Part shown: one piece after another, positions 1,902 through 56,925 of the stretch | Layout: the number at the start of each line of letters is the position of its first letter | Position numbering within the stretch: the first letter of the stretch is position 1 | Source: Callorhinchus milii | Taxonomy: Eukaryota | Length of the DNA stretch: 64,000 bases | Assembly (NCBI RefSeq): GCF_018977255.1 | Contig: NW_024704746.1 | Location: forward strand, 68,138,001 to 68,202,000 | Direction of reading: 5' to 3' | The notes under the pieces: generated by a model | The model's database searches: none | Told to the model about the DNA's origin: nothing | Seen by the model: the letters and a program-made list of their open reading frames with translations, nothing else | Made by a program: the position numbers and the translations under genes

Positions 1902-2452
1902 CTGATTGAAAGACAAGACAATAGACAATCAGACACAAGATCACAGGCAAACTTTCGATCAAAATTTAAAAACAACACCTGATCTCATCTTTGCACAATA
2001 CCCAAGCTGCCATCATCGCATTACAGAATCAAATTATTTCTTAAATGTGTCCCGTCCCCAGCTCAACTATTTATTCTACAAAGAAAGGAGAAAGAACTTG
2101 TGTATTTATAGATCTGATCACTTGAAACCATCTCAAAGTGTTTTATTGTAATTATTGTCAAAAGTAGTTGTGTTTTGTAGGTAAATGTGGTGTCAATTAT
2201 GCACATCGCAAAGGCCCACAAATAGCCATGAGATGAATGAATGGTTAATTTGAAGGATTGTTGGCCAGGACGTTGGGAGACACTTTGTATTCCTCTGTGG
2301 TGGGATCTTTAACATCTACCAAATCTGATGATGATTCTTGTTACTAATTCCTGGAGCACTTCAGCATTTTGATAATCGTTTGCTATCATTACCTCTGAGT
2401 CTTTGTCTGAAAGGAGCCTAATGTCATGAGAAGTTTCAAAATTATTACTCAC

Positions 2453-2528
2453 GTTAGAGTCAGGAAAACTGAGTTGTCCCTCTGATCCATGGCCAGAAAA
2501 GTAGATGAAGATGTTATCTTGGGGTTTA
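2453..2528 (-). CDS. lgmn-like: Legumain-like catalytic-His exon (IYFSGHG)
   Basis: ccacag| acceptor, |gtgagt donor, 76 bp. Confidence 0.92.
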
Positions 2529-5371
2529 CTGTGGTAATAAGTATTTGCAATAAACTGTCACTGTATTTCTATCAGCTGATGCAATAATCATCACGTGCTC
2601 AGTGGTATTTCCATACCCCTACTTACAATAATAATAAGAATCTTTGCATTTGATACAGCGCCTTATCACGTCTTTGAGACGTCTCAAAGCGCTTCACAGG
2701 ATATACTGTAAAGTGTAATACTAGGATCCTATGAGCTGTCTTTACAACTTTGTCCAGTCAGTTGCCTTTTTGGCTTTGAAGACTTATGTAAGTTAACCCC
2801 TAGTGGGGAGAAATTCCCCCCAAGTCTGGATTTACCCTATTTATGTAGATTTCAGAGCATATAGAATTCACCAAGTTATTGGATCCAGACTTAACCTTGA
2901 AGACGGTTTTCTGTAGTTCATGTCTTTGGACATCTGACAAACACGGACTTGAACCTATATAATTGTATGTAAGTTATTTCTGGCCAACTACCTTCCAGAT
3001 GAATCGTTCTTCCATAATCGATTGCATTTTGTAAATCACTTCAAGACAGTTGTTACCATCACCGGTAAGAAACCGTCACTGATTTCAGAGCATTGGTATC
3101 ATTAGAAAGATTAACACGAGATGTTTGTACCTTTTAATCACCCGTCCACTTCCTATTCCGCGAACGGCAGCTTCATTGCCTGTCAGCACCGACAGGAAAT
3201 TCTTTGGAGTAACATCCTGTGTGTGTGTGTGTGTGGGGTGGGGTGGGGGGTAGAATATAAATTGGTTTAATAGAAATATATAATATGAATTATATAATAT
3301 AAAAGTGAGAAATAAGTAATCACTTTATAAAGTTATAATTTTAAAGTTTTTTTTGTTCTTGCATGTATAACGCACTTAAATATGAATTAATGGTGATTGA
3401 ATGACTTTACAATGCTCAGTAGTGCATCAGTGCTCCAACACTCTATCCTGGTTGAGGGTACTATATAAATAATAATACTAATTTACATTTACATCTCAAA
3501 GCACATCACAGGGACAATGGGATTCACTGGTTGTAGTGTATGAAAAGTTAGGAAAGTCTGAGGAACAAACCGTAGACAGAGATCAGTACAGATATACTTA
3601 CTTTTCCAGTGTAGTCTTTTTGGACGCCTTCATACACATTGAGTTCAGATTGGCTGCTGATGAGAACACCTGGAGTTGGGTTTCTGGTTGCCCAAGAGAA
3701 GTCAAGAAAGGAAATGACCAATATGAGCACACTTATCACTTCCAATTTTTTTTCCTCTCCATCGTTTCTAACTATTCCCCTGGGGAGCGGAGAGGTAGGT
3801 GTTGGGGCTAAACTGGCTTCAGGGTGACTTGCTTGGCATTGGAATGTGGAATCAAGTGAACTCTCTGCGGTGCTTTTGGTCTTCCAGCTCCTGAGATGGG
3901 CAGGTCCTGGACATGGCTGATAGGGCCAGCAAATCCAGCTCATTGGCAAGCCGTATAGAGACAGAGTCATCTCCATGGGACAGGGATTCTTCCTTTAAGC
4001 TTCTGTTAACCCTGCAAGCAAAGACCCTAATGGGTGGGAAGGTCCAAGCTGGACATGGAATGGACAGGTGGTTTTAATGGCAAACTAATGTTTTTTAGCT
4101 GGTGGAACTCCAGCAATTAACCCAATCTATACTCTGGGGTCTCCAAGCTGTGGCTCACTCCAACTTGTGTATAATCTTCTCCAGAATTAGATAAGCCGGG
4201 TGTGTCACTCCAGGAAGAAAGTGCCATGATAGTCACATGTTAACAAGAAAGCTTCAGATGAAGAGGATCCTTTAGCTTTCCAGAATCTCAACCCTACTTT
4301 CTTCTCATTGTAACATCAATAATAATAATAATTCTTGCATTTGATATAGCACTTTTCACGTCTTCTTGACGTCTCAAAGCTCTTCACAGAATATGCTGTA
4401 AAGTGAATTGACTATATATTTGTGGGCAAATCAACATGTTCCTTAAAGCATTCAGCAATCTGGCCTTTACCAACATTCCTTTCTAGCTTTTGTTTAGCTT
4501 CTGTATAAAGAAATAATAATAATAATGAGGTCACAAGATTGGTTTGGATGGAGAAGATTAATGACTGAATAGACTAATAAATATATATACTTTCATTGTT
4601 TACCTGTCATTGTGCGCAATGTCGTCGTACATCATCACCACTATCTGTTCAGCTGGAATCTTGTTCCTACGGACAATCTGATAGGCATGACATATGTTGG
4701 CCTGAAAATAAAAAATATTTAACATTTTAGACCTCCAGAAGATAGCAACGAGGGGATCTAAAGGAGAATTTAGGAGGAACTATTTCACACAGAGGGTAGT
4801 GAGATTATGGAACTCGCTGCCAGAAGTGGTGGTTGAATCAGACGGTGTAGATGCATTGAAGAGGAAAATAAACCTTCACATGAGGGAGAGGTGAATAGAA
4901 GGGTTTGGGAGGGAGGGAGTGAGGAATGGGTGAAGACTTGTGTGGAGTATAAACACCAGTACAGACTGGTTGGGCCTCGTGACCTGTTTCTGTGTTGTAC
5001 GTTCTGGGTGAATCTTCACATCTGATGTGAAAGACGGCATCTCCAACAATCCAGAGTTCCCCCAGTTCAACAACAACAACAACTTGGATTTATACAGTGC
5101 CCTCCACGCCGGACGGCGTCTCAGAGCACTTGTTCTGAATTGGAGTGTTATCTTTCACTGTGATCTACACTCCCAACATTTGGCTTCAACACACAACCTT
5201 CACAAAGGCGAAACCATGACAAGAGGAGGAGCCAAACTGATACGTCAGAAGACATTTCACTGATGTCTGAAGCCAATAATAATGGAATTGCTTCACTTAC
5301 CTGATCACAATAGTCGTCCCAGGTCTTTGAACCTGCCACAAGCAGGACCCACTGTTTGACGGGGGTTGTAT
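2453..5371 (-). CDS. lgmn-like: Legumain-like (peptidase C13) gene, divergent paralog; securely identified exons join(5371-5301,4701-4604,3683-3602,3216-3131,2528-2453)
   Basis: Five AG..GT exons splice in frame: (D)[137 protein letters not shown]. This is colinear with legumain. Exon sizes 98/82/86/76 bp match human LGMN exons 3-6 as I recall them. The 3' half of the gene is unresolved. Confidence 0.93.
3131..3216 (-). CDS. lgmn-like: Legumain-like exon ([15 protein letters not shown])
   Basis: cacag| acceptor, |gtacaa donor, 86 bp. Confidence 0.92.
3602..3683 (-). CDS. lgmn-like: Legumain-like exon (NPTPG..KDYTGK)
   Basis: accag| acceptor, |gtaagt donor, 82 bp; lies within track ORF 3548..3976. 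Confidence 0.92.
4604..4701 (-). CDS. lgmn-like: Legumain-like exon ([18 protein letters not shown])
   Basis: ttttcag| acceptor, |gtaaac donor, 98 bp. Confidence 0.93.
5301..5371 (-). CDS. lgmn-like: Legumain-like exon ([13 protein letters not shown])
   Basis: ttacag| acceptor, |gtaagt donor, 71 bp, phase 1-0. Confidence 0.9.
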
Positions 5372-10027: not shown

Positions 10028-10294
10028 CACAGTAAAGCCCAGGCGAGTGGATTGGTGGATGAAGCATCTGAGACGTGCTGACTGATAACTACTGTGATCC
10101 TACTTGCACATCTGTAAATCTTTTCTATAACTTACACTTTTCTTTAAACCTGAGACAACTGCAAGATGAACATAAAACATACAAAAAACACACCAAAGGC
10201 AGACGGAACACGCCTGGAAATGTACAGATGAAACAAAAACTGTCGAATGTCTGAGATGATGAACAGGAAAAGTGTCAATTGGGAATTTGCACAG

Positions 10295-10810
10295 AAGTCT
10301 GAGTCACACCAGTCACAAACAATTTGTACGCAGGTACAGCAAGCAACTAGGAAGGCTAATGGCATGTTGGCATTTAATGAAAAAGGGTTAGAGTACAAGA
10401 GTAGGGAGGTCTTGCTGCAGTTGTATGAGGCCTTGGTGAGACTGGACCTGGAATATTGTGTGCAGTTTTGGTCTCCTTATTTAAGAAAGGACATACTCGC
10501 CTTAGAGGGGGTGCAGCGTAGATTCACTAGGTTGGTTCCTGGGATGAGGGGGTTGACCTATGAGGATAGGTTGAGTAAACCAGGCCTATATTTTCTAGAA
10601 TATAGAAGAATTAGGGGTGATCGTAGAGAAACATATAAGATTCTTATGGGGCTTGACAGAGTAGACAGTACGAGACTATTTCCTCTGGTAGGAGAATCTA
10701 GAACTAGGGGTCACAGTCTTAAGATTAAGGGACAGCCTTTTCGAACAGAGTTGAGGAATTTATGGACTACCCGAATGGCCTACCTCTGCTCCTAATTCCT
10801 TTGTTCCTAT
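10295..10810 (+). mobile_element. CR1 LINE 3' fragment
   Basis: LVRLDLEYCVQFWSPYLRKDI..VQRRFTRL. Confidence 0.92.
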
Positions 10811-11928: not shown

Positions 11929-12021
11929 TCATCGCAACACTTGGCTGTACACCATCTCCTCCTCTCTTCTCGTTACTCGACCGGGCTTCTTCAGATCCAG
12001 CTGTGCATAGCAGATGTTCTC
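11929..12021 (-). CDS. Ig receptor terminal exon with two ITIM-type motifs
   Basis: ENICYAQLDLKKPGRVTRREEEMVYSQVLR*. Confidence 0.85.
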   Translation of the reverse strand, partial: ENICYAQLDLKKPGRVTRREEEMVYSQVLR

Positions 12022-15000
12022 CTGACCAATACAGACATTATGAGGAGTGGGGGGTGGGTGGGAGGGGGTGGGGTAGAGGGAGGGAAGGAGGGAGGAAGGT
12101 GGAATACGGAACAAAAAACATAGTAGGTCAATTTTGTGACTGCGTGTGATCTGCTAATCAACACCTATGGGAAGCACTTTGAAATGTTTCGTTGTTCTAT
12201 CCTACAGAAATGGAAGTTTTTCCTTTCTTAACTGGGCCGACAAGGGGCGGATGAAGTTCAACACAGATAAATGCAAATTACGGAATTTAGGAAGAATGGG
12301 AAACTTGGGCGCTCCACGGATGGGATTCAACTTGTCAAGGGTGAGGCTGAAACACTTGTGGTGTTATTGCTCATTGCTCAACATGTCAAAATGGTGTAAC
12401 AGGAATAAACAAAGCAAACAGGATGCTGGACTACATTGCCAACCCAGTTGAGTTCAGATCCCAGACACCAGACATGATCGCCAGAACTAGAGGGATGAGC
12501 TGTGAGCAACGATCAGACAAGTTGGGGCTTATCAATGTCGAAAAGGCACAGGTACAGAGGGTGTGAAGGGCAATTTCAGGACAGACACCAGGAAATATTT
12601 CTTTATCCAGGATGTGATGGATATTCTGAAGGGATGAGGTCAGACAAGCTGAATGGCCTTCTTTATCCAAACCAATCTTGTGTCTTTGTGAAATGAATAA
12701 TTTACAGAACAGTGCCATTTTAACCCCAGATGTGTTATCCATTCCCAGCATCTGGATCAGCACCCGCCCGAAGAAAAAAACACAAATGGTCCGAAGAAAA
12801 AAAGTTGATAAAAACTGACGTTATTTCCATGTCAACATTTTCATATTGCACTCACCTGATCATCCTCCCCGAGGGGTGGCCTGCGGGTACTCCCCACAGC
12901 CTGTCGCTGGGCTGCAAATGTCAGGCAACAGAAAGTCACTAAACAACAACAGCTTGCATTTACACAGCGCCCCTCATGTAGGGCAGCGTCCCAGAGCGCA
13001 TGATAGTGTCAGAGCACGAAGGGGGGAGGGGGAGATGACCATAGGCACGGAGGAAGGTCGGAGGAAGGTCTTCAGGCACGACCTGAAGATGGGGAAGGAA
13101 GAGGCCAGGCGGAGGGACAGAGGGAGAGTGTTCCAGAGTTTCGGGGGGTAGTGCCTCACAAAAAGCCTCACCAGTGTGATTTCTTTCACCTTCAGGTGCT
13201 AATTGACCGACTGTGAATTGCAAGGCATCCACTGTAGTAACATAGGTGTGTTTTAGACACTTTGCTGCTCTCTCTGGAACTCTCTCCTTAAATGCCTCCA
13301 CCTCGCACAAGCCCCCTCAGCTTTCAAAAACCCTCTGAAAAAGCTACAACTTGGACTGAAAGTTATTACTCAGGACAGTGCAGTTACTTCCACTGGTCGG
13401 TGACTATAGACATCAATGTAAGAGTTAGCAAGTGTGCAAAGTGAGAGGTTAAGAGGTTTGTTCTACAATAATAATAATCCTTGCATTTGATAAAGCGCTT
13501 TTCACGTCGGGAGGACGTCCCAAAGCGATGCGCAGAATATACTGTAAAGTGAATTGACTGTATATTTGTGGGCGAACGCGGCAGCCAATTGCGCACAGCA
13601 ATGTCCCACAAACAGTCGTAGATTGAAAATGACCAATTTATTATTGCTTTTGGTTTTGGAGGGATTATTATTAGGCTCTGTGTGGAGTAAGGAAACTTGC
13701 CCAAGGTTTCGCCCTCTTCCTGGAATTGAACTCAGGTCTCTCACTTACAAAGCGAGTGCTCTAATCACTGAGCTACAGCTACACAGGATGTGGAAAGCCC
13801 TGCTGTGTGCTGTGGTCGAGTCACAATCCATATAAACTTTCTAGAGGAAACTTTGCTCCTTTAATATCTTATCCCCCCTCCAGTAGAAAAAGCCCCCATG
13901 TAAAAAAATCTGATCCTAGCTCAGGGTTGGAAGGGAGATGGACAATAGTGTGCCGTCCTAATGGAGGTCATTGCTATTGTGTGCGAGTAGAGAAGCTACT
14001 TACAACATCTGCGTTTTACCACCAAAGCAGCAAATCCTGTTACACCACATCCCACAAGTATACTGACCGAGATGCTGATGTAAATCCAGAGATATCTGGT
14101 GCGGTCTGTAAATCAGGGACAATAAGAGATGGTTTATGCGGTACGGAAACTCTGTTACATACAGTCAAAAATAATAATAATAATCCTTGCATTTCATACA
14201 GAGTTAATCACATCACTGAGATGTCTCAAAGCTCTTCCCAGGATCTACTTGAAGTGTAGTGACTCTGTGTTTATGCGGACGAACACGGCAGCCAATCTGC
14301 GCACAGCAATGTCCCGCATATGGCTTTGGTGTGAATGATCAATTTTATCTCAGGGATTGTTAGTCAGGAGACTGGGAGAAACTTTTGAGATGATTATCAC
14401 ATTGCACTCAAATCAACTCAACCAACCGGTCAGAGGGAAAACAGATACTGTCTGACTGTCTTGCTACATCGACCTGTCCACTCCCTCCGTTCAACAGGCT
14501 CAAGCTTGTTCTGGCCAATCCTACCATTAACGGTCAGGCTCTCAGCCATTCTGACCCACCCTTTGGAACTCCATCCCACATTCCCTTCACCTCACCCCCT
14601 CCTTTGCCTCCTTCAAGGCACATCTCAAGACCCTCCTTTTCGACCGCGCCTTCGGTCACCCTCCAACCCCCACCGTCCCTGCCCTCCACCTTTCCTGATC
14701 CCAAACCCCAGCTCTGGTCCAAATAATAATAATAATAATCCTTGCACTTGATATAATGCTTTTCACGTCTTCTCGACGTCTCAAAGCGCTTCACAGAATA
14801 TACTGTAAAGTGAATTGACTGTATGTTTGTGGGCGAACGCGGCAGCCAATTGCGCACAGCAATGTCCCACAAACAGTCATGGATTGAAAATGACCAATTT
14901 ATTATTGTTTTGTTTTTTTGGAGGGATTATTATTCCCTGACTGTCCAGCTCAACGCCTTGGGACGTCCTCCTGACTTGAAAGGCGGTGTGTAAATATCAT

Positions 15001-18000
15001 GTGTTGTTGGTGTTGGTGTTGTTGTTGTCTAACCTCCGATCCAGGGGTGGGCAAAATACGTCCCGCGGGCCATATCCGGTCCGCCAAATGATTCTATCCA
15101 GCCCGTCATTGTGTCCAGCAATAGAAAAAAATTATAGTTTGTTCAGTCCCGGAAAGGATCAGTTTTAAATGCGTCCCTTATGTTTCTTACGTTTGTCACA
15201 CAGCGTCGATGTTTAATTGCTAAAGCCGTTAGTTTTTTTTTGCATTTCAATCAGACCGGGAACGTCAGCCAATCACACGGCTTAGTTGTGCGCCGGCTCC
15301 CTTCAGCGTTGAATCGGGCTGACGTCAGAAATTTACTGATCGGCGAATTTTCAAACACGGTGTCGGCCACGGCACGAGCAGCGTAAAGCCTCACCGCCAT
15401 TAATAATTTTCACCGATGAGGACGTCACTGTGATTTATCCGTTTATTACGCGTTTGCATTTTTTGTGCACCGATTTGGTATCTGTATCTATATCGCCCAT
15501 AAACCGCGAATGTTAATTCGAAATGAGTTTATCAAAGAAAAGGAAAGCGGACGCTGGAGGCCGAATATTCAACAAAGAATGGACTTCCAAATATTTTTTT
15601 TTACCGGTGTGGGTGGAAAAGCTGCGGCCTTAATTTCCAAAGCAAGTGTGGCAGCGCTCAACTTGAATCGGCATTTGGAGAGCAAACACGCTTGCAAATA
15701 TAAGAACTTTTCTGCCGAAGAAGAAGGAAAAAAAGCTGGTGAGAGATGGTTGTTCGAATGCAAAAAGAGCAAAGCATTTTCACGGAACAATTCGAGTCCC
15801 TGGAAGAGATTACAAGAGTGAGTTACGTGATTGCACACAAAATCGCCAAGAACAGCAAACCATTCTCTGAAGGAGAATTTATAAAAGAATGCATTGACTC
15901 TGCCTCGATTTTATGCCCAGACAAGAAAAAATAGTTCGGGAACAATAGCTTGTCAAGGCGAACTACTGTGAGACGTGTCGAGGATATCTCTGAGAACCTG
16001 TATCTGCAGTTAAAAAATAAAGTAAACAATTTTGCATGTTTTTCACTGGCACTCGATGAGAGTTGTGATGTCAAAGACACAGCCCAGTTGATATTTTTTT
16101 ATTCAAGGTATCACCAAACATCTTGAGCTCACAGAAGAATTGGCATCAACGCAGTCAATGAAAGATACGACAACTGGAGAAGACTTTTTGGAGGCAGTAA
16201 ATAAGTGCGTCTTAAAATTAGGAGTGGATTGGAAAAGAATGGTGAATGTGACCACCGATGGAAGCCCAAATCTGACGGGCAAAAATGTTGGGTTACTGAA
16301 AAGAATTCAAGATCAAGTCAAAGAAACAAATCCAGAACAGAATATTGTTTTTCTACACTGCATTATCCACCAAGAGGTCCTCTGTGAGAGTGTTCTAAAA
16401 CTAAGCAATGTCGTGGACACAGTTACGGAAGTGGTCAACTCCATTCGAGCAAAAGGATTAAGCCACAGGCAATGCGTAACGCCGCTTGAGGAATTGGAAT
16501 CCGAGCACACGGATGTTCTGTGTCACACGAATGTAAGATGGCTCAGTTTAGGAAAGGTCTTGAAAAGAGTGTGAGAACTGAGAGCAGAGATTGATTTATT
16601 TTTGGACCTCAAACAAAAAGATTGGGATTTCCCACAGCTGAATGATGCCAATTGGCTCTGATTTCGCATTTGCCGTTAATATCATGGGCCATGTGAACGA
16701 ATTGAATTCAAAGCTGCAGCGGAAGGGCCTTTGTGCACGATTTGTATTGCGGCGTCAAGTCATTTATGACAAAATGACTTATTTTATCGCGTCAGATAGG
16801 AAACAGGCAGTTCGCCCACTTTCTAACTTTGCAGCAGATCAAAGCCTTAAAAAGTATACTTCGTCACTATTTGGCTTACGTGCCAAATTTTTTTGACGAT
16901 TCCAGGATTTCAATTTGATTGACAATGACCTGTCTTTAGTCTCTTCACCTTTCTCATTTGATGTTGACAAAGCCCCACTTGGCCTCCAATTTGAGCTTAT
17001 TGACCTGCAATGTGATCCATTGCTTGCGGAGCAATTCAAATCAGTGCCGCTTCCCAGTTTTTACGCTTCTCTTAATGAATATACCTTTCAAAAAATAAAG
17101 GCTCATGCCCAGAGGAGGCTTGAGCTGTTTGGATCAACATACATATGCGAGCAGACATTTTCTGTGATGAAATTCAATAAATCAAAACAGAGATCTGCGA
17201 TGACTGATGACCACCTTGCAGCAGTACTCCGCATTGCAACAACGGAGACAACGCCTGACTTCAGTTGTCTGGTTAACGCACATCAGCGCTTTCATTCTTC
17301 CCATTGAGTGAGCGTCTCACATTCTCATCAACATGTGAATAAATGAATAAATATCGAATAAATGTCTGCTCGATGAGTTGTTTTTATTTAACCTAATTTT
17401 AACGAATGTCAATTATATGGACTTTATTTTATGCACGTACAAGCGTAAGGCTTGATTTTGAGCTATTATTAAGCGTTTGCATCTATGTTAAGTGTGTGAC
17501 CCGTGAAGCTTACCAAAACTCATGAAGCCAAAATAATTTCCCACCCTGCTCCAATCGTTTGGCTGAGTGGAGTCCAGCCCCACCAGCAGCACAAAATGCC
17601 ACACTTGACATCTGCAATGGCAGCCACCAACAGCTTCCGGTCCTACCAATGTGTTGAGGTAAGTGGAGGAGGGGGTGGGAAGGGGATGGGTGGTAGCATC
17701 AAACCAGTTGCCAAACAGCCTGGACTCAGCTCAACCAACATTGCCCACAAATGTACAGTCAAATCACTTTACAGTCTATTCTGTGAAGCGCTTTGAGACG
17801 TCGAGAAGACGTGAAAAGCGCTATATCAAACGCGAGGATTATTATTTTTTATGATAACCAAACAATCAGAAGTGAGACAGTCGCTTTCAAGATGAATTGA
17901 AAAAATATTTGCAATTTTCACATATTTGCACGTTTCCCACCCAATGTCAGGTACCTACGTGCTGAGCCTTCGTGTGGTTTTGTATAGGTGTTCTCGCTGC

Positions 18001-21000
18001 GTACATGTGTATAAGTTCACCTAACCACAGGACGCCTGAAATGGCATGAGCTGGACAGCCTGAGCCACAGGAGGTGCAACCTTCGCGACAGAGAGCTTCA
18101 GGCTGCTCTCCGCTTGCTGCACCGATCAGCGGAAACTCTGAGGTGTGCACAAGTTAGACCAGTGTTGTCTCGGGTCCCACCGCACCCTCGCTGTTTCTTC
18201 CCATCTAACCTTCACACGTTAGCATTTCACAGAAATTAAAAGCTAAAAATATTTCATAAGCGAGAAGGCACAAATACAAGCTGGTCAGCAGCAGATCTAA
18301 CAGGGCGTTTAGGAGGAAATTACCCACAAAATTTACAGTCAATTCACTTTTTAGTATATCCTGTGAAGTGCTTTGAGACGTCTCGAAGACGTGATAAGGA
18401 GGTGTATCAAATGCAAGATTATTAACATTAATATTTGCATTTAATACAACGTCTTTCACATCCTTGCGCTGTCTCAAAGCACTTCACAGGATTTACTGCG
18501 ATGTACAGCGACTCCCAGCAAACAGCCATGAAGTGAATCTGGACTCACTCCATGAGTGAGGTGTAAACCATGATGATTTCTGATGGGCTTTTATTCCTGT
18601 TAGACTTGCAGGGTGGCCATTCTGGAGAGGACAGTATCAGAGTGGCGTTGTTGTGGCTCAATCGGCCCAAGTCCCTGTTCATGTGACTTGGTTTCCCTTT
18701 GATAGAAGTCAGGACCTTGCTCTAGCTCCTGCCTCCCTCCCACTATCTTCCTATTACAACATCATCCTCTCTTTACCACCACTACACTTCCAGTAGCCAA
18801 TTCAGATCGCCCTCTGTGGAAAGAATCCTGGTACTTTCTTCATTGTCCTGAAATTTCCCGTCACACCCTCAAACTGTGCCCTTTAGTCCTGCTGCTTTGC
18901 TATGTCTGTAAGCATTGCTCCAAGTTTACTTTCTCTCTGTGTTGAACATCTTACATTATTGGGTCTCGCCTCTGAGTCAGACAAGTTCGATTTGCACGTT
19001 GGGACTTTGAGCTCCCAGTCTAGGCTGATGCTCTGTAGGAGCGTTACATGGTCAGGGGTGACGTCCTTTCGGTGAGACGTTCAACTGAAAATGGTGACTC
19101 GATCCACGACTGTTTGTGGGACGCTGCTGTGCGCAATTAGCTGCTGCATCTCACCCACAATTCACAAAGTCAATTCACTTTACAGTGTATCCTGTGAAGC
19201 ACTTTGCGACGTCTCAAAGACGTGATAAGGCGCTGTATCAAATGCCAGGATTATTATTATTATAGTCGCACAGTAGGATTATTAACGTCCACTTGAACAG
19301 GGCACATGCGAGGAGTTTGGTTTAACATCTCATCTGAAGGACAGGCCTTGGGAGTGGTGTGAAGGAGATTAAACTAACAAAGCTGTTTAACTGGTTCACA
19401 AGTGGCAAAGGTTGGAGCTTGAGTAGGTGCATGAAAGAGGTGAGGTTAAAGAGGTTAAGGTGTAACGTACCCTTGTGTGTTGGAGGTATGAACGCGGTCT
19501 GGTTTATCTCCGACTGCAATGCTGGGTGCTGGACGGTGCACGTGATGTGGGCTCCATCAGAGCAGGTCTCTGTGGAGACGCAAGCAGTGGCTGTCATGTT
19601 GTAGGTTCTGTCGGAGTTTCTGGTCGGAGTGGAGAGGGTCCACTTGGTGAGGCGATGGGCAAGGCAGGTGCTGTGAAATCTCATCTCGATAGATTCCGGG
19701 TAGAAGCCGCTTGCCAAACACATGACCAGGACCCGGGAAGAAGAGTTTTCCACAGGGACCGATGGGAATATCCGAAGGGCAGGACAAGCTGGTTACAAAA
19801 AGTAATGGGAGAGCAATTACAAGGGAGTGAATCCAAGTGCATGGGATAGAGTATGTCACAGAGAGTGTGGCTCTAGTGGACAGGACACTGGGTCAATAAG
19901 TACAACAACAACAACTTGCATTTACATAGCGCCCCTCACGCAGGGCAGCTTGACATGGGTGGAGCACAACACCAAGAGGGGGAAGGTGACTTTAGGCACG
20001 GTCAAAGAGGAAGGACCTGAAGATGAAGAAGGAAGGGGGCAAGGATAAGAGGGAGCGTGTTCCAGAGTTTCAACGCTGAAAGTGCGGCCACTGATGGTAG
20101 AATGGAGTCACCCCATGTAGGAGCCGGAGCCAGTCGAGTGGAGGCAGCGGGGAGTGGAGTGGGGGGAACGGAGGTTTGGGAGGTAGGGAGGGTCAGGGCA
20201 TGAAGGGATTGAAAAGGAATTTGAGGATCTTGAAATCAATCTATTGGGCAATAGATCTCAGTACAGTAAGTAAAGTATTTCTGAAAAAGAAATTGTGTGC
20301 CAGGGCTGGATGAGGCGTCTGGAGTCTAACCAACTAAAATCACAAAACTTGCCTTTGAGACCATCCTCTCCGTTAGGGCTTTGGCTGTGGGGTTACCGGG
20401 GGTGAGGGGGAGGATTCCCTGCCCCCAGTGACTGGTCGGCCCTTCCAGGTCCTGCCGATGAGCCGGGCTGCGCTGCCATCAGCACAGGGACACTGTGGCC
20501 CCTTCTGGCTCAGGAACCGGGGACTAGAGACCGTCACAGAAGGGTGGATCAATTTCGACTTTCTGTTGCCAAACATTTTACCTTAGAGCCAGTTCAGCTC
20601 CGAGGAGACCTCGCTTACCTCCTCCTAAGGAGAATAGGAGGATCAACAAATCAAATTCATCAAACGTGCAAAATAATTACCGGTCACATTCAGCCTCGTC
20701 CCTGTTCCCATGTTTGTGTTTGTCGGAGGAGGTAGGGCTATAGCCAACTCACAGCGATACACTCCACTGTCATTGACTTGTACATCTTTGATTTGCAGAG
20801 TAAACGTTTTATTCGTGACATTGTGCATGACAGCATAGCGAGAGTGATTCAACAAACTGGTTGGTAATGTCACGGTGGAGTTCATGGTATCAGCCTGGAA
20901 ATACCACCGTATTGTAAACCTTTCTAAACGAGCTGCTTCATGCCGACAACTCAATGTCACGCAGTCTCCCTTCGATGCAGTAAGAGCTGATAACTGGTGC

Positions 21001-22207
21001 AAAACCATGTGAGCTGGGTGACACGCTGGAGGGAAGAAATTCAGAAAGGAATTATCACAACAGGTCCATTAGTAATCATACTCCTGAGTTTAAGCTCCCA
21101 CACACACAGCCTTACAAGCCAACAATTCAAAACAAACAGGTACAAATTCACTTGCCTAATTCACTGTAAATGTTGAATCGATCCCCAGGAAACAATAACA
21201 AGCGATATTTACACAGCGCCTTTCACGTTGGGAGACGTCCCAAGGCGCTGGGGGTTGGGATCAGAAGGGTGGAGGCAGGGAGGGTAAGGGTAGGAGGGTG
21301 ACCGAAAGCATGGTCGAAGAAGCGGGTTTTTGAGATGGTAAACCAGGCTGCAGTAGACCATCCCTTGCCTTGAAGGAGGCAAGAAAGGAGGTGAGGCAAA
21401 GGAACCTGAGCTCAAACATACACCCTGTAAATTCAACTCCAGCCCGTCAGATGTTGATGCAAAAAGTGTGTTGTGAGCTGTGAAAATGATCTCGGACCGC
21501 AGGTCACCCCATTTCACATCCTGCATTGAATAGAATCATAAACACTTACATGACCCATTTGGCTCTTCATGTCTGTGTCGGCTCTTTTAAACAGCGATCC
21601 TTTCAGTGATCATTTCAGTCCCATTTACCTGCCTTCCCTACCCCCAAACCCCACGACATCTAACAAAACAGAATACACTGTAAAGTGAATTGACTGTATA
21701 TTTGGTGGGCGAAACCTGGCAGCCAGTTGCGCACACCAGCGTCCCACAAACAGTCATAAATTCAGTGTCCAAATTATTACAGTATTATTAGTTTTTTTTT
21801 GAAGGGATGATAATGCCCGAAAAGTGATCCACCAATCAACTAACAACCGGGTTCCTACTTAGTGCTACGTAAACCGAGGCCGGTGGAGTAAGGAAACTTG
21901 CCTAACAGTTTACTCTGCCCAGTAATCGAACGCAGGTCCTCTCGCCTGTGAGGCGAATGCTCTGACCACTGAGCTACAGGACTCCACAATCACCTCCAGT
22001 CACTGATCCATTGTCACCTTTAACTTTATGTATTCCAATGCGCTTTTCCATCTCAGTGTTTCACAGCCATGTTCCACAACAACAACAGCTTGCACTTATA
22101 TAGCACCCTAACACACGGATTAGCATCTCGGAGTGCTTCACGTTGTTCCTCAGAAGCCCCATACCTGTGAACAACAGCATCAAGGAGAGGTAGGTTAATG
22201 TAGCCAT
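11929..22207 (-). CDS. Inhibitory Ig-superfamily receptor, leader-V(J-joined)-C1-TM-2xITIM, 318 aa; join(22207-22165,21025-20681,19788-19471,14105-14004,12911-12856,12021-11929)
   Basis: All six exons have AG/GT ends and compatible phases (1,1,1,1,0); 957 bp with no internal stop. Signal MATLTYLSLMLLFTA; V ..VTLSC..IRWY..DSGVYRC..LPPP..MGTGTRLNVT; C1 CLASGFYP..ITCTVQHPAL; TM YLWIYISISVSILVGCGVTGFAALVV-KRR; tail ICYAQL and MVYSQV. Confidence 0.9.
12856..12911 (-). CDS. Ig receptor cytoplasmic exon 1
   Basis: tttgcag|..|gtgagt, 56 bp, phase 1-0, SQRQAVGSTRRPPLGEDDQ. Confidence 0.8.
13467..13778 (-). mobile_element. Internally deleted SINE subfamily copy
   Basis: Near reverse complement of 58582-58913. 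Confidence 0.85.
14004..14105 (-). CDS. Ig receptor transmembrane exon
   Basis: gatttacag|..|gtaagt, 102 bp, hydrophobic span followed by KRR stop-transfer. Confidence 0.88.
15042..17548 (+). mobile_element. Full-length decayed hAT (Charlie/Buster/SPIN, GTF2IRD2-like) DNA transposon
   Basis: TIRs caggggtgggcaaaa and taatttcccaccctg; 8-bp TSD ctccgatc/ctccaatc; transposase motifs FSLALDE, TTDGSP, HCIIHQ, RWLS, FGSTYICEQTFS split by stops and frameshifts. Confidence 0.93.
19471..19788 (-). CDS. Ig receptor C1-set exon
   Basis: 318 bp, phase 1-1, C-x-A-x-G-F-Y-P and C-x-V-x-H motifs. Confidence 0.93.
20681..21025 (-). CDS. Ig receptor V-set (VJ-type) exon
   Basis: 345 bp, phase 1-1, canonical Cys/Trp/Cys and GxGT G-strand. 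Confidence 0.95.
21670..21985 (-). mobile_element. Same SINE
   Basis: Reverse-complement head and body. Confidence 0.85.
22165..22207 (-). CDS. Ig receptor leader exon
   Basis: ATG..MATLTYLSLMLLFT G|gtatgg, phase 1. Confidence 0.8.
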
Positions 22208-24339: not shown

Positions 24340-24900
24340 AACTTTCTCTATAACTTTCTGTGTATGTATATTTATATACAGACACACTGTAACTCTGTGT
24401 ATATACACTATATCTCTGTGTGTTTATATACATTGTATCTCTGTATATATGTGTACACTGTATCTCTGTGTATATACACTGTATATCTGTGTATATATAC
24501 ACTGTATCTCTGTGTATATACACTGTATATCTATGTATATATACACTGTATCTGTGTGTATACACTGTGGATATATATCTGTGTGTAAACACTGAGTTCA
24601 TATATATACAGTCTCTCTGTGTGTAAACACTGTGTATAAATACACTGTGTCTCCGTGTGTAAACACAGTATCTCTGTGTGTAAACACAGTATCTCTGTGT
24701 GTAAACACAGTATCTCTGTGTGTAAACACAGTATCTCTGTGTGTATACATAATGTATATACTGTATATACTGTATCACTATGTGTAAACACTGTGTATAT
24801 ATAGATCCACTGTACCTCTGTGTGTAAACATTGCGTATATATACTGTATCTCTGTATGTATACATTGTATCAGTGTGTGTATACACTGTATCTGTGTGTG
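24340..24900. repeat. Degenerate AT/AC-rich minisatellite (about 19-21 bp, e.g. gtgtgtaaacacagtatctct)
   Basis: Visible tandem units. Confidence 0.9.
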
Positions 24901-24901
24901 A

Positions 24902-25535
24902 AAAGGGGTTGGGGAGGGGGAGGGGTTGGGGGAGGGGGAGGGGTTAGGGGAGGGGTTGGGGAGGGGTTGGGGAGGGGGAGGGGTTGGGGGAGGGGGAGGG
25001 GTTAGGGGAGGGGAGGGGTTAGGGGAGGGGTTGGGGGGGGGGGGGGGAGGGGTTGGGGAGGGGAGGGTTAGGGGAGGGGGAGGGGTTGGGGGAGGGGGAG
25101 GGGTTGGGGGAGGGGGAGGGGTTGGGGGAGGGGGAGGGGTTGGGGGGGGGAGGGGTTGGGGGAGGGGGAGGGGTTGGGGGAGGGGAGGGTTGGGGGAGGG
25201 GGAGGGGTTGGGGGAGGGGAGGGGTTGGGGGAGGGGGAGGGTTGGGGGAGGGGGAGGGGTTGGGGGAGGGGGAGGGGTTGGGGGAGGGGGAGGGGTTGGG
25301 GAGGGGGAGGGTTAGGGAGGGGGAGGGGTTGGGGGAGGGGGAGGGGTTGGGGGAGGGGGAGGGTTAGGGGAGGGGGAGGGGTTGGGGGAGGGGGAGGGGT
25401 TGGGGAGGGGAGGGGTTGGGAGGGGAGGGGTTGGGGGAGGGGGGGGGGGGGGGGGTTGGGGAGGGGGGGGAGGGGTTGGGGGAGGGGGAGGGGTTGGGGA
25501 GGGGAGGGGTTAGGGGAGGGGGAGGGGTTGGGGGT
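24902..25535. repeat. G-rich 18-bp tandem array (ggggttgggggaggggga)n, G-quadruplex forming
   Basis: About 630 bp of G4-5 tracts separated by 1-2 nt. Confidence 0.95.
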
Positions 25536-25549
25536 TATGGTGCGATGTT

Positions 25550-25600
25550 ATTGGCTGAGACTCTAAGCCCCGCCTCTGGGCCGCGCATGCGCGCGCGCGT
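25550..25600. promoter_or_regulatory. CpG-type promoter: CCAAT (25550-25554), GC box (25568-25574), NRF1 palindrome GCGCATGCGC (25583-25592)
   Basis: Three classic promoter motifs within 45 bp in a local CpG cluster; target gene not determined. Confidence 0.6.
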
Positions 25601-25654
25601 TCTGTTCTGAGTTAATGCGCTGCGCGAGGATCGCAAACCATTTTACTGATTAAC

Positions 25655-26470
25655 TACAGCGACAGTCACTACACCAACAGCGACAGTCACTACACCAACA
25701 GCGACAGTCACTACAGTACGTGCTACAGTCACTACAACTACAGTTACTACAGCGACAGTCACGTCAGCGACAGCGACAGTCACTACAGTAAGTGCTACAG
25801 TCACTACAGCAACAGCCACAGTAACTATCGGCAGTACAGTAACTATCTACAGTAACAGCTGCAGTAACTATCTACAGTAACTATCTAACAGTAACTATCT
25901 ACAGTAACTATCGGCAGTAACTATGTGCAGTAACTATGTGCAGTAACTATCGGCAGTAACTATCTACAGTAACAGCTGCAGTAACTATCTGCAGTAACTA
26001 TCTGCAGTAACTATCGGCAGTAACTATCGGCAGTAACTATCGGCAGTAACTATCGGCAGTAACTATCTGCAGTAACTATTTGCAGTAATTATTTGCAGTA
26101 ACTATCGGCAGTAACTATCGGCAGTAACTATCGGCAGTAACTATCGGCAGTAACTATCTACAGTAACAGCTGCAGTAACTATCGGCAGTAACTATCGGCA
26201 GTAACTATCTACAGTAACTATCTACAGTAACAGCCACAGTAACTATCTACAGTAACAGCCACAGTAACTATCTACAGTAACAGCTGCAGTAACTATCAGC
26301 AGTAACTATCTGCAGTAACTATCTGCAGTAACTATCTACAGTAACTACCTGCAGTAACAGCCACAGTAACTATCTACAGTAACTACCTGCAGTAACTATC
26401 TACAGTAACAGCCACAGTAACTATCTACAGTAACTACCTGCAGTAACTATCGGCAGTAACAGCTGCAGCG
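25655..26470. repeat. 12/13-bp minisatellite (cagtaactatctg / cagtaactatcgg / cagtaacagctg variants)
   Basis: Visible tandem units with variant interspersion. Confidence 0.95.
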
Positions 26471-44043: not shown

Positions 44044-46534
44044 ATGGTTTCCAGTTTGCTGGTTGTGGTATTCTTGGGAACAATTGCGTTGAGAGCTGAG
44101 GCGGCTGGAGCCAGTGATGGTAAGAATATAATGAAAGTCAAGATTGCAGCATCTGATGGGCATTATGCCAAAACAAGTATATTTGGCTGAGTGACAGAAA
44201 GCAGAGGGTGGTGGTTAATGGGTGTTTCTCGAAATGGAAGGAGGTGTGCAGCGGTGTCCCCCAGGGATCGGTATTGGGACCACTGCTCTTTCTAATATAT
44301 ATTAATGATCTGGACTTGGGCATAGAGAACACTATTTCCAAGTTTGCAGATGATACCAAGTTAGGTCGGGCAGTAAATAGTGAGGAGGACTGTAACCAAC
44401 TGCAGGCAGACATACACAGAATGGTGGAATGGGCTGACATGTGGCAGATGGATTTCAATGTGGATAAGTGTGAGGTGATACACTTAGGGAGGAAAAATGA
44501 TAGGAGGCAATATAGACTTGGAGCTCAATCTTAAGGGGGGTGAACGTACAGAGAGATCTGGGTGTTCAAGTAAGCAATTCATTAAAGGTAGTGGGGCAGG
44601 TAGATAAGGCAGTAAAAAAGGCATTTGGTGTACTGAGCTTTATTAGTAGGGGCATAGAGTACAAGAGTAGGGGTTATGGTTAATCTGTACAAAACACTGG
44701 TTAGGCCTCAGCTGGAGTACTGCGTCCAGTTCTGGGCACCTTACCTCAGGAAGGACATTAAGGCACTGGAAAGGGTGCAGAGGAGATTCACGAGAATGAT
44801 ACCAGGAATGGGGAACCTTAGCTATGAGGACAGGCTGGAGAAGTTAGGACTTTTCCCATTAGAGCAGAGAAGGTTACGTGGGGACCTGATAGAGGTCTTC
44901 AAGATCATGAAAGGTTTCGACAGGCGAGATAGGGAAAAGCTATTTCCGCTGGTAGGTGTGTCTGTGACTCGTGGTCACAGTCTTAAGATATCTACCAAAA
45001 GAAGCAGAAGGGAGGTTAGAAGACATTTTTTCACTCAGCGAGTTGTTGGGATTTGGAATGATCCGCCCGAAAGGGCAGTGAAGTCCGATTCGACAACAGC
45101 TTTTAAGAGAGAACTGGACAGGTATCTGGGGAAGACGGGTTTGCAGGGTTATGGGGAGAAAGCAGGTGAGTGGGGTTAATAAAAGTCAGTTGCTCTGTCA
45201 AAGAGCCGCACAGACTCGATGGGCCGAATGGCCTCCTTCTGTGCCATAACATTCTATGAATCTATGAATCTATGAATTTGGATGATATGTTCTGTAATTT
45301 TTTTTGTGTGTGATAAGGAGAGGGCATTTTAAATATTTACAGAAACTACAGTATTGTAATTAATTAGGTTACCATACAGAACTTGTCTTTGACCCTGGCG
45401 TGAAGCGCTGAGGACATGTCTAAATATCTGGATTAACATGATTCAGTCAGAAGCATGCTCGCCTCTGGGTCAACAGATTGTGGTTTCCTACCCCTCATTG
45501 GTACTTGAGCTCGAAGATCTGGCTGACTCTCCAGCCTGGTGCTGGGAGAACGCTGCATTGTTCGAGGTACGATCATTCAAATGAGACATTAAACCAAGGT
45601 CCCATCAGCCCTTTGTAGTGTAGCGCAATTCAGAGAGAGAAACTCTCTTCTCCTTTCAATTATTGCCGTGGGATATTTAAAGTCTCTCTGAACAGGCAGA
45701 TGAGGCATCGGTTTAATGTTCCAAAGGAACGACACCTACAGCAATCCAGTGCTCCCCCGGTGTGTTAGCTGAAAATCCCCAACATTGAGCTCAAACCTTC
45801 TGAACCAGAGGCAATGGTCTCCCCAGTGAGCCGGGCTGACAATTTCCTAGTGATGCTGCTTTGATCATTGACCAGGTTTTGTCATTTCTTCGTTGAACAG
45901 AACCTCAGGTCGCTGTGAAAATCAACGCTCGGGGAATCATGAGAGGCTACTCGCCTGTCCTGAAAGATGGCTGTTTTACAAGTTTGCCTACTACAGCTTC
46001 CACACAATAAACCTGGGCGGCAGCCGAGATACTGATAGTTTTAATATTGACTCTTCACATATGTAAACTCAGAGCAACTACAATACACAGATGACAAGAG
46101 GGTGGATATAAGTCCAGGATGTGTAGGGCAGGTTTCAAAAAGAGACCAGGAGATATTCATCTGTCGGCCTGGCTCAGTTAATAGCATTCCCCACTCCGAG
46201 TCAGAAGATTGTTCAATCCACCTTGCATCAGGACTTTGAGCTCACAGTATAGGTTGTCACTCCAGCTCAGTGCTGTAATGGGGGACCCAGGGGGTGCTGC
46301 ACTGTCCTTCAGGTGGGAGTGGGGAGCAAGCACTAGCACGACATGATGGGGAGAGAGCAGGGAATGGGGTTAGAGTAGAGAGCTCCAGCAGTGGAGCGAG
46401 CACAAGCACAGGCATGATGGGGAGAGAGAGAGAGAGAGCATGACTCAGTGGAAAACAATATAGTTGCTGCAATAATAATGGAGAAGGAGAAAGAAGATGT
46501 CAGGGTCTGGATTGGATGGCATGTTCCTGAAGAG
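44044..46534 (+). pseudogene. Secreted C-type lectin pseudogene: leader 44044-44119, exon 45901-46028, exon remnant 46439-46534
   Basis: Leader MVSSLLVVVFLGTIALRAEAAGASD G|gtaaga. Second exon reads CPERWLFYKFAYYSF..TWAAAE only across two frameshifts, and its donor is AT instead of GT. Third reads HDSVENNIVAAII..VWIGWH|gtaaag, with its 5' end replaced by a repeat. No last exon found. Confidence 0.7.
44185..45276 (+). mobile_element. 5'-truncated CR1 LINE (RT C-terminus + 3' tail)
   Basis: [41 protein letters not shown]; (tctatgaa)n tail. Confidence 0.95.
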
Positions 46535-56226: not shown

Positions 56227-56925
56227 TCATCCAGGACTCGATGTCGGACAGACAGCCGTCAGGACATCAGGGGTCGTGGAGTTGAGGGTAGAGGAGGAAA
56301 GGTAGAGTTGGGTGTCATCCGCATACATGTGGAAGTTAACCCCATGTCTGCGGATGATGTCCCTGAGGGGGAGCGTATAGAGAGTGAAGAGGAGGGGACC
56401 GAGGACAGAACCCTGAGGGACACCGCACAAGACAGTGCGGGGGGTGGAGGAAAAGCCGTTTGTGGAAACAAAATGAAGACGGTGGGAGAGATACGACCTA
56501 AACCACTCAAGGACAGGGCCTTGAAGGTTGAGGTGGGAGCACAAGCGGTGGAGGAAAATAGAGTGGTCGACCATATCCAATGCAGCCGATAGGTCGAGGA
56601 CTAAGCACTTTCAGATGTCCAGAAGACGTCAAAAGGGCTATATCAAAGGCAAGGATTATTTATTATTATGAAGTTGAGGCGGTGTGAGAGGTATGATCTG
56701 AACCAGTCAACGATAGAGCCGTGGAGGCTGAGGTGAGAGGAGAGGCGGTGGATGAGGATAGATTGGTCCACGATGTCGAAGGCAGCAGAGAGGTCAAGGA
56801 GGCAGAGGGAGCCTTGGTCACAGATGGGCAGAATGTCATGTGTTACTTTGACCAGGGCTGTTTCTATGCTATGGGCGACACGGAAACCAGAAGGGAGTGG
56901 CGGGAGAGGAAGGAGCAAAGCCTGT
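56227..56925 (-). mobile_element. Two L2-clade LINE RT fragments
   Basis: [23 protein letters not shown]; LLDLSAAFD. Confidence 0.9.

Follow-up and report, generated by a model that had tools for sequence, protein, structure and literature searches.

The locus described here raises the question of which receptor family is represented by a non-rearranging VJ-C1 gene in the elephant shark (Callorhinchus milii). Interest in genes of this type stems from the search for relics of the gene whose splitting by the RAG transposon gave antibodies and T-cell receptors. The gene is located on the minus strand, from position 22207 to position 11929, of the analysed stretch of 64,000 nucleotides (hereafter the window), and probably encodes a non-rearranging V-C1 inhibitory immunoreceptor, the chimaera member of a family that is widespread in jawed vertebrates, with mammals as the exception as far as seen. 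It is one more member of a little-studied family extending from sharks to turtles, and not a one-off.

The gene comprises six exons with compatible phases, all introns being of the GT-AG type. The spliced model derived from the window (CDS of 957 nt, 318 aa, ATG at 22207 and final TGA base at 11929) is exactly the protein proposed in a preliminary description of this DNA, whose outline of a 318-aa leader-V-C1-TM-tail receptor is borne out in every detail. Exon 1 (22165..22207; minus strand, like all features given below) contains the start codon and the greater part of the signal peptide (MATLTYLSLMLLFT plus 1 nt) and ends at the phase-1 donor G/gtatgg, a split leader layout. Exon 2 (20681..21025; acceptor ccctccag, donor G/gtaatt) encodes the end of the leader, the complete V domain and a J-like G strand, and is thus a germline-joined VJ exon. 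Exon 3 (19471..19788) encodes the C1-set domain, which contains FYP and CTVQH as well as an extra cysteine pair (C171/C205). Exon 4 (14004..14105) provides a short stalk, an uncharged transmembrane helix (YLWIYISISVSILVGCGVTGFAALVV) and the stop-transfer sequence KRRC. Exon 5 (12856..12911) is a 56-nt cytoplasmic exon (SQRQAVGSTRRPPLGEDDQ), the best splice-site candidate, which keeps the frame between the transmembrane and ITIM exons, and exon 6 (11929..12021) encodes ENICYAQLDLKKPGRVTRREEEMVYSQVLR followed by the stop codon, with two ITIM-type tyrosines 20 residues apart. The receptor gene is real and intact, and its pattern is far beyond chance, as exon 5, which was chosen from splice signals alone, can be aligned with the cyt1 exon in both catshark and ray, and as the identical plan of six exons with VJ in a single exon is present in the genes of gar, catshark and ray, the three species checked. 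The window contains one V exon and one C1 exon; no second copy of either and no cluster is present in its 64 kb, and the adjoining gene is legumain-like.

The ectodomain is complete and non-rearranging, as had been proposed. The V domain and its J-like strand (...YRCELAIALPPPTNTNMGTGTRLNVT; ...GTGTRLNVT) are encoded in one exon, no RSS heptamer is found in or near this exon, and Pfam assigns a V-set domain (3.7e-13) followed by a C1-set domain (1.2e-11), the second domain having the C1 hallmarks FYP and CxVxH. The FG loop (YRCELAIALPPPTNTNMGTG), located with the G strand at 20682..20753 (CELAIALPPPTNTNMGTGTRLNVT), matches YxCx6PPPx5GxG with the spacing of CTLA4/CD28X, so that the CD28-like PPP loop of the preliminary description is confirmed in its CTLA-4-type form. 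Nine N-x-S/T sequons for N-glycosylation are present. The cytoplasmic tail contains ICYAQL and MVYSQV. Both of the ITIM-type motifs claimed earlier are present in a tail of inhibitory type, but the second has Met at -2 and falls outside the strict ITIM consensus [ILVS]xYxx[ILV], where its relatives have I or V.

Relatives were identified by searching 1.84 billion representatives with the V exon as query, the best 150 matches being visible. Among the matches listed are proteins from catshark (XP_038667670, 344 aa), zebra shark (XP_059510499), two rays (Narcine, XP_069765712; stingray, XP_072922972), spotted gar (XP_015207742), newt (XP_078512177), axolotl (XP_069483859) and turtle (A0A8C8VP15), while none of the best 150 matches is from birds or mammals. 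The five relatives that were aligned share 25-39% identity with the window protein over the full length, and the database names of the relatives are 'SIRP-alpha-like', 'Ig kappa-like' or 'uncharacterized'. Two C. milii models, both fragmentary and mis-spliced, are the sole near-identical database entries, and the exact 318-aa product has no verbatim match in a collection of 15 billion proteins. A word-indexed protein search returned only these two broken models, and a turtle-fragment query added none; this kind of search, run with the family profile, missed the family's own members, and its negatives mean little.

The family is coherent by several measures. Against the family profile its V domains reach 81-148 bits, compared with 47.6 bits for the top outsider, and monophyly is recovered in the V tree (88/79) as well as in the C1 tree (96/95). 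The PPP-x5-GxG loop is kept in every member, although one ray has PAP and the third G is variable, and the only match outside the family among the unrelated hits examined is a loose one with PAP in a 3465-aa protein. In the family alignments the two additional cysteines of C1 (C171 and C205) are invariant. Relatives that have the tail carry an ITIM pair like that of the window protein. The spacing of the two tyrosines is 20 residues in chimaera, catshark, ray and gar; a stingray has 19. The newt and axolotl members are without the ITIM tail, and the family is therefore not uniformly inhibitory; the axolotl form has the arrangement (V-C1)x2. Compared with its relatives, the chimaera protein has a shorter C'-C'' region, extra cysteines (C36, C131 and C199) and the Met at -2 of the second motif. 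Within 10 kb on either side, the neighbours of the gar and ray genes are GTF3C6 and NLR, and no legumain gene adjoins the gar, catshark or ray genes in flanks of this size.

Compared by architecture and distribution as described, this family is most likely the published PRARP family. PRARP is reportedly composed of a non-rearranging VJ domain, a transmembrane segment and an ITIM, with a C1 domain in all groups but birds; it is said to occur in bony fish, amphibians, reptiles and birds, to be absent from mammals and to lie outside every known receptor family. The C. milii gene has the same traits, namely VJ in one non-rearranging exon, a C1-set domain (as in non-avian PRARP), a transmembrane segment and cytoplasmic ITIM-type motifs, so the likeness is one by description. 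The distribution may be PRARP-like as well: gar, salamanders and turtle are found among the best 150 matches, together with sharks, rays and chimaera; we know of no report of PRARP from cartilaginous fish. The chicken PRARP genes reportedly form a pair with one ITIM each, whereas C. milii has a single gene with two. No PRARP-named protein was returned by the protein or representative searches, and none of the literature supplements examined lists the gene. The suggestion that the receptor might be undescribed is not upheld, since the same gene is automatically annotated in sharks, rays, gar, salamanders and turtle and fits the description of PRARP, a type that the preliminary description itself listed as known.

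The gene might instead be a true cartilaginous-fish SIRP orthologue, a short V-C1 form of SIRP-alpha binding a CD47-like ligand, but this is unlikely. Both proteins have a VJ-type V domain followed by a C1-set domain and paired YAxL and YSxV ITIMs, the tail pair resembling the pairs of SIRP-alpha. The paired ITIMs of SIRP recruit SHP-1/2, and chicken SIRP is reportedly a V-C1 protein with two ITIMs. In NCBI the genes of the sharks and rays go under the name 'PTPNS1 (SIRP-alpha)-like'. The C1 domain, as judged by profile scores, is nearest to SIRP domain 3: the best single-domain PDB matches of the family C1 profile are domain 3 of SIRP-gamma (65 bits) and of SIRP-alpha (63 bits), ahead of IgG heavy chains (~52 bits for the whole chain, with CH3 as the best stretch) and of each UrIg2 domain (23-26 bits), and a local panel likewise places C1 closest to SIRP. 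The likeness is limited to this domain. In the V-domain panel, where the SIRP-alpha sequence was entered by hand, SIRP-alpha V scores 21 bits compared with 38 for CTLA-4 and 25 for V-kappa, and is also below CD79B and PD-1; in hhalign the V domain of SIRP-alpha reaches 46, compared with 58 for CTLA-4 and 55 for V-kappa. When the whole V or V-C1 region is used as a PDB query, antibodies and multi-domain proteins crowd the results, and CTLA-4 and SIRP are not ranked. Neither the V nor the C1 tree links the family with SIRP, the latter being a polytomy in which the gene falls inside neither SIRP nor NCR3LG1, the two groupings that the preliminary description had named as contrary to its reading. 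The C. milii protein has one C1 domain instead of two and two tail tyrosines instead of four, and neither the PPP loop nor the additional cysteine pair of C1, a putative disulfide, occurs in the SIRP-alpha sequence used. The neighbouring genes also differ: the window's legumain-like gene, together with GTF3C6 and an NLR in the 10 kb flanks of gar and ray, are presumably not genes of the human SIRP region, which we take to be 20p13.

It is rather improbable that the gene encodes a receptor of the CD28/CTLA-4 family with a retained or acquired C1 domain, whose PPP loop binds a B7-family ligand. The FG loop is an exact match to YxCx6PPPx5GxG, the signature defined for CTLA4 and CD28X (PMC11599192), with identical spacing. 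In the V tree the family is sister to CD28/CTLA-4/ICOS (84/81), CTLA-4 is the top scorer in the local V panel (37.8 bits), and in gar a B7-type IgV exon is located ~6 kb upstream of the orthologue. However, the grouping with CD28/CTLA-4/ICOS is lost once the V domain is trimmed of its FG loop and G strand, and the remainder of the V domain has no specific affinity to CTLA-4/CD28X. In hhalign, the family V profile scores V-kappa nearly level with CTLA-4 (55.0 vs 57.9), and a TCR V-alpha in PDB reaches 47.7 bits. The V domain appears about equally distant from CTLA-4 and V-kappa. Every CD28-family member (9/9) has a single V domain (PMC11599192), whereas a C1-set domain follows the V domain in the C. 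milii gene. This single V domain is carried on a cysteine stalk, with tails of the YxxM/YVKM type; in the alignments the C. milii protein is without the conserved stalk cysteine, without the YxxxxT dimerisation motif in its transmembrane segment and without a tail of the YxxM or YxNx type, having ITIMs only. The window and the examined flanks of shark and ray contain no B7-like exon.

A further reading, which we consider equally improbable, is that the family is the surviving VJ-C1 form of the lineage behind the CD28/CTLA-4 receptors, with an inherited PPP-GxG loop and a B7-family ligand possibly encoded by a neighbouring gene. If true, second-signal receptors would be tied to an antigen-receptor-like ancestor predating the split between cartilaginous and bony fish. 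Taken alone, the family does not show that the CD28 family is linked to antigen receptors. The earlier proposal that the receptor bridges the CD28/PD-1/NKp30 and TCR/Ig/SIRP families is a weak one that depends on a single loop: its CD28 side goes with the FG loop and G strand, CTLA-4 and V-kappa score alike, and its SIRP side is confined to C1.

Still less probable is an origin within the antigen-receptor lineage proper, as a relic of the UrIg/UrIg2 type or as a germline-joined light-chain gene. The V-J-C1 region aligns end to end with Ig kappa light chains (45-49 bits, domain scores) and with UrIg2 V-C1 (39 bits), and the gene shares with UrIg2 (PDB 9dmx) and Ig light chains an unsplit VJ exon beside a C1 exon and a split leader. 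The AlphaFold model of the gar member is mediocre (mean pLDDT 62, with domains at about 75-85), and the best Foldseek matches of its ectodomain are Fab and TCR chains; these matches of a predicted structure confirm the shape of a V+C1 chain and do not discriminate between families. Germline-joined IgL genes do exist in cartilaginous fish (PMC12227049). However, Ig light chains are secreted and without ITIMs, whereas the C. milii gene has transmembrane and ITIM exons, and UrIg2 has nine C domains and no ITIMs, compared with one C1 domain and an ITIM-type tail. UrIg2 is no nearer than generic Ig (26.7 bits for V and 27 bits for C1 in the panel, 23-26 bits for each C domain against PDB) and is sister to the family in neither the V nor the C1 tree. 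UrIg genes are reported only from elasmobranchs, whereas the family is present in gar, salamanders and turtle. The gene is a single copy outside any cluster, and multiple C1 domains like those of UrIg, which form an Fc-like dimer, are absent from the 64 kb window. Since Phe in the J strand is substituted and the WYQQ motif shows no conservation of its Gln, the face normally used for V-V pairing is not retained.

It is hardly credible that the gene model is over-extended, with foreign transmembrane and ITIM exons, or that the gene is a dead pseudogene. The only C. milii models found in public databases are in fragments and wrongly spliced, and the long intron 3 (5.4 kb) contains transposase-like ORF fragments, but all six exons are open and phase-compatible with good splice sites. 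The annotated genes of catshark, ray and gar have their exons in this order, small cyt1 and ITIM exons among them, and the motifs are conserved.

Other candidates were tried and rejected. A rearranging antigen receptor or a conventional germline-joined IgL gene does not agree with the lack of an RSS heptamer in or near the V exon, the transmembrane and ITIM exons and the single copy. NCR3LG1 (B7-H6), which combines a B7-type V domain lacking a J strand with a C1-like domain and whose reference sequence was entered by hand, scores only 12.5 bits for V; its C domain is second best (39 bits) and is not joined with the family in the tree. NITR was rejected as the second domain is C1-set (1.2e-11) and not I-type, an I-set match falling on the V domain.

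As a non-rearranging V-C1 inhibitory immunoreceptor, the C. milii protein would be displayed on leukocytes and may bind a candidate ligand via the tip of its V domain, where the presumably rigid PPP loop followed by a GxG bulge would form the most conserved surface feature. Src-family kinases are predicted to phosphorylate both tail tyrosines, and the doubly phosphorylated tail could then dock the tandem SH2 domains of SHP-1/SHP-2, damping activating signals. Pairing with an ITAM adaptor is not expected, as the transmembrane helix has no charged residue.

The six-exon structure provides a correct model of this gene, for which the public elephant-shark models found are broken. Across its span the family has retained a PPP loop of the CTLA-4 style, a putative additional disulfide in C1 and an ITIM spacing of 20 residues. 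It is, to our knowledge, older than reported so far and possesses a conserved and testable binding loop.

The chimaera receptor gene was rebuilt one exon at a time on the minus strand (22207-11929) of the window, which contains 0 N and has the look of a repeat-rich vertebrate genome. The joined model, checked after assembly, has six exons, a CDS of 957 nt, introns that are all GT-AG and phases that are all compatible, and its 318-aa product is identical to the protein of the preliminary description. Exon 1 (22207-22165) encodes the bulk of the signal peptide and is followed by a phase-1 intron, which is the 'split leader' layout, while exon 2 (21025-20681) encodes the remainder of the leader and the entire V domain with its J-like G strand (…YRCELAIALPPPTNTNMGTGTRLNVT), so that V and J lie in a single exon as previously read; no RSS heptamer was found in this VJ exon. 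The C1-set domain is encoded by exon 3 (19788-19471), and Pfam recognizes both domains in the protein (V-set, 3.7e-13; C1-set, 1.2e-11). Exon 4 (14105-14004) encodes the uncharged TM, exon 5 (12911-12856, 56 nt) is cytoplasmic, and exon 6 (12021-11929) bears both proposed ITIM-type motifs, ICYAQL and MVYSQV, the second of which departs from the strict ITIM consensus in having Met at position -2 in place of I, L, V or S. The nine N-glycosylation sequons were all recovered as N-x-S/T in the joined model. The gene and its features are thus real, and the 64 kb window contains no further V or C1 exons besides the receptor's own. Intron 3 owes its length of 5.4 kb partly to several long, decayed-transposase-like ORF fragments on the plus strand (15465-17307), which by eye resemble the hAT/GTF2IRD2 type, and in which Pfam found nothing significant.

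Only two proteins in the large collection are nearly identical to the product, both of them fragmentary and mis-spliced predictions from Callorhinchus milii: XP_007907328 ('Ig heavy chain Mem5-like') and one UniRef V-set protein. These matches identify the window as elephant shark DNA. One of the two predictions already has a junction between the J strand and the C1 exon identical to that of the rebuilt model. HMMER was run with the V exon against all 1.84 billion representative proteins, and among the best 150 matches multi-Ig proteins are in the majority, alongside a set of single-V proteins in which the whole query is covered at 38-51% identity. The relatives are from small-spotted catshark (XP_038667670, 344 aa, named 'SIRP-alpha-like'), the electric ray Narcine (XP_069765712), zebra shark (named 'Ig kappa-like'), red stingray, spotted gar (XP_015207742, named 'uncharacterized'), one newt species, axolotl and a side-necked turtle; the five proteins aligned share 25-39% full-length identity with the chimaera protein. 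The six-exon plan is shared by the genes of gar, catshark and ray: each has a single VJ exon and the small cyt1 exon, and the latter independently supports the choice of exon 5.

All members of this receptor family contain the motif YxCx6P(P/A)Px5Gx(G/S/W/E), which outside the family has only one loose PAP match among the best 150 scan matches, and in the C1 alignment an invariant extra cysteine pair accompanies the canonical one. Where the tail is present, its tyrosines are spaced by 20 residues in chimaera, catshark, ray and gar and by 19 in stingray; the salamander relatives are short-tailed and lack ITIMs, and in axolotl the gene is a tandem (V-C1)x2. The family V-domain profile gives members 81-148 bits and the top outsider in the sample, an uncharacterized multi-V shark protein, 47.6 bits, and the family is therefore sharply bounded. 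The closest non-family V domains among the matches listed belong to uncharacterized multi-V-domain shark and ray proteins (P0046, P0062, P0093 and P0150), variously auto-named IgSF2/3-like, SIRP-alpha-like or perlecan-like, and these may form a receptor family with lineage-specific expansion.

As a single sequence, the chimaera V domain matches V-kappa, shark IgNAR V and TCR V best in PDB. Against a local panel of reference sequences, the family V profile scored 37.8 bits for human CTLA-4, 31.8 for CD79B, 31.0 for CD28, 28.0 for PD-1, 26.7 for UrIg2 V, 25-26 for V-lambda and V-kappa and 21.4 for SIRP-alpha V; one TCR V-alpha in PDB reached 47.7 bits. In the V phylogeny that had been proposed, CD28/CTLA-4/ICOS is the sister of the receptor family (84/81), but only with the FG loop and G strand included: when all sequences were cut directly after the second cysteine, the grouping was lost to an unresolved comb, and the CD28 link therefore lies in the loop alone. 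YxCx6PPPx4/5GxG, the signature of CTLA4 and CD28X according to Quiniou et al. (PMC11599192), also fits the chimaera loop, whereas the CD28 family is defined by a single V domain (PMC11599192), a definition that excludes the chimaera receptor. As hhalign likewise scores CTLA-4 (57.9) little above V-kappa (55.0), with SIRP-alpha V at 46.1, the suggestion that the receptor bridges these families is not supported. Family members carry M, I, R, Q or K in place of the J-strand Phe and do not conserve the Gln of WYQQ, so the V-V pairing face of antigen receptors has not been kept. An AlphaFold model of the gar relative, of moderate quality, has Fab and TCR chains as its best structural matches, which confirms only the shape of a V+C1 chain. 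UrIg2, the elasmobranch non-rearranging VJ-C gene (PMC12227049), reaches 39 bits in the V-C1 alignment, no better than ordinary kappa chains (45-49 bits).

The top single-domain PDB matches of the family C1 profile are domain 3 of SIRP-gamma (65 bits) and of SIRP-alpha (63 bits), which accounts for the NCBI label 'SIRP-alpha-like'. IgG heavy chains score about 52 bits over the whole chain, with CH3 as the best-matched stretch, and the UrIg2 domains 23-26 bits each. In the C1 tree, also run as proposed, the receptor family is monophyletic (96/95) within a polytomy with SIRP d3, CH3, MHC/B2M and B7-H6 C, and lies outside both SIRP and NCR3LG1.

Src-family kinases would phosphorylate both ITIM-type tyrosines, which lie about 20 residues apart in a receptor whose TM is uncharged, and the tail would then bind the tandem SH2 domains of SHP-1/SHP-2 and deliver an inhibitory signal. 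SIRP-alpha, PD-1, PECAM-1 and others recruit SHP-1/SHP-2 through tandem SH2 domains in the same way, and we infer the signalling route from this established ITIM biology. The receptor most likely binds its putative ligand with the tip of the V domain, around the rigid PPP loop, as this loop is the most conserved exposed element. In the spotted gar locus (L001), a B7-family IgV exon (3599-3991, minus strand; best PDB matches VTCN1/B7-H4, 4.7e-12, and CD276/B7-H3) is located some 6 kb upstream of the receptor relative. The annotation assigns this exon to the N-terminus of a V-set + NACHT + LRR protein, which reflects either an unusual Ig-NLR gene retained next to the receptor or a gene model that fuses separate genes. 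A V-set + NACHT neighbour also lies beside the ray relative in the Narcine locus (L003, 33935 onward), and nothing comparable was found in the 64 kb window. The gar exon is a possible lead to the receptor's ligand.

About 6.5 kb downstream of the chimaera gene, tail-to-head, are the 5' exons of a legumain-like (Peptidase C13) gene (2426-5357, minus strand), which extends past the left end of the window and shares 44-73% identity per exon with human legumain. Upstream is a minisatellite block (24384-26468) of, in order, 21/42-bp units, an 18-bp G-rich unit in about 36 copies (24904-25534) and a 13-bp unit in about 49 copies; the GC skew maximum of the window (0.43) falls in the 24-26 kb segment with the G-rich array. 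An intron-poor ORF pair of 231 and 793 aa (50146-50841 and 51613-53994, plus strand), each without internal intron, lies about 28 kb upstream on the opposite strand. Residues 520-606 of the 793-aa ORF contain one TSP1 (thrombospondin type 1) and one LDLa (LDL-receptor class A) domain; the remainder, with its three cysteine-rich C-terminal repeats ending RPCPG, matches nothing in Pfam or PDB, and the pair is an unexplained gene. LINE reverse-transcriptase-like ORF fragments occur at 10247-10795 (+), 44676-45179 (+) and 56227-56580 (-), and a short SINE-like element (translation ...KCKDYYYY...IHFTVYS) is present in many copies throughout the window, including the receptor gene introns. On the human map, we take none of the legumain-like gene, minisatellites and TSP1/LDLa ORFs to indicate an MHC, TCR/IgH complex or SIRP region, and synteny is thus uninformative at the scale of the window.

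The VJ exon without RSS heptamer, followed by a C1-set exon, bears out the reading as a non-rearranging VJ-C1 receptor, and the assignment of the chimaera gene as an inhibitory receptor of this type is well supported. PRARP, in the account of Fu et al. (2019), is reportedly a chicken pair of non-rearranging VJ genes with ITIM, said to be expressed in B and T cells, to have orthologues with V-C1 structure in bony fish, amphibians and reptiles, and to fall outside all known families. The architecture found here agrees with that account, the two being compared by description only, and gar, salamander and turtle relatives are among the best 150 scan matches; the receptor family probably consists of PRARP members. 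The term 'undescribed' is not supported, as relatives occur in sharks, rays, gar, salamanders and turtle and the preliminary description itself named PRARP, which is cited among VJ-type non-rearranging genes (PMC10751288; PMC11599192), as a known type. If the membership is true, the new points would be the extension of the PRARP family back to Chondrichthyes, chimaera included, its near-invariant CTLA-4-type loop and a C1 domain nearest to SIRP domain 3. The chimaera gene adds a member and a corrected gene model to a known but poorly studied kind of receptor, and is of moderate relevance for work on the origins of antigen receptors and checkpoint receptors.
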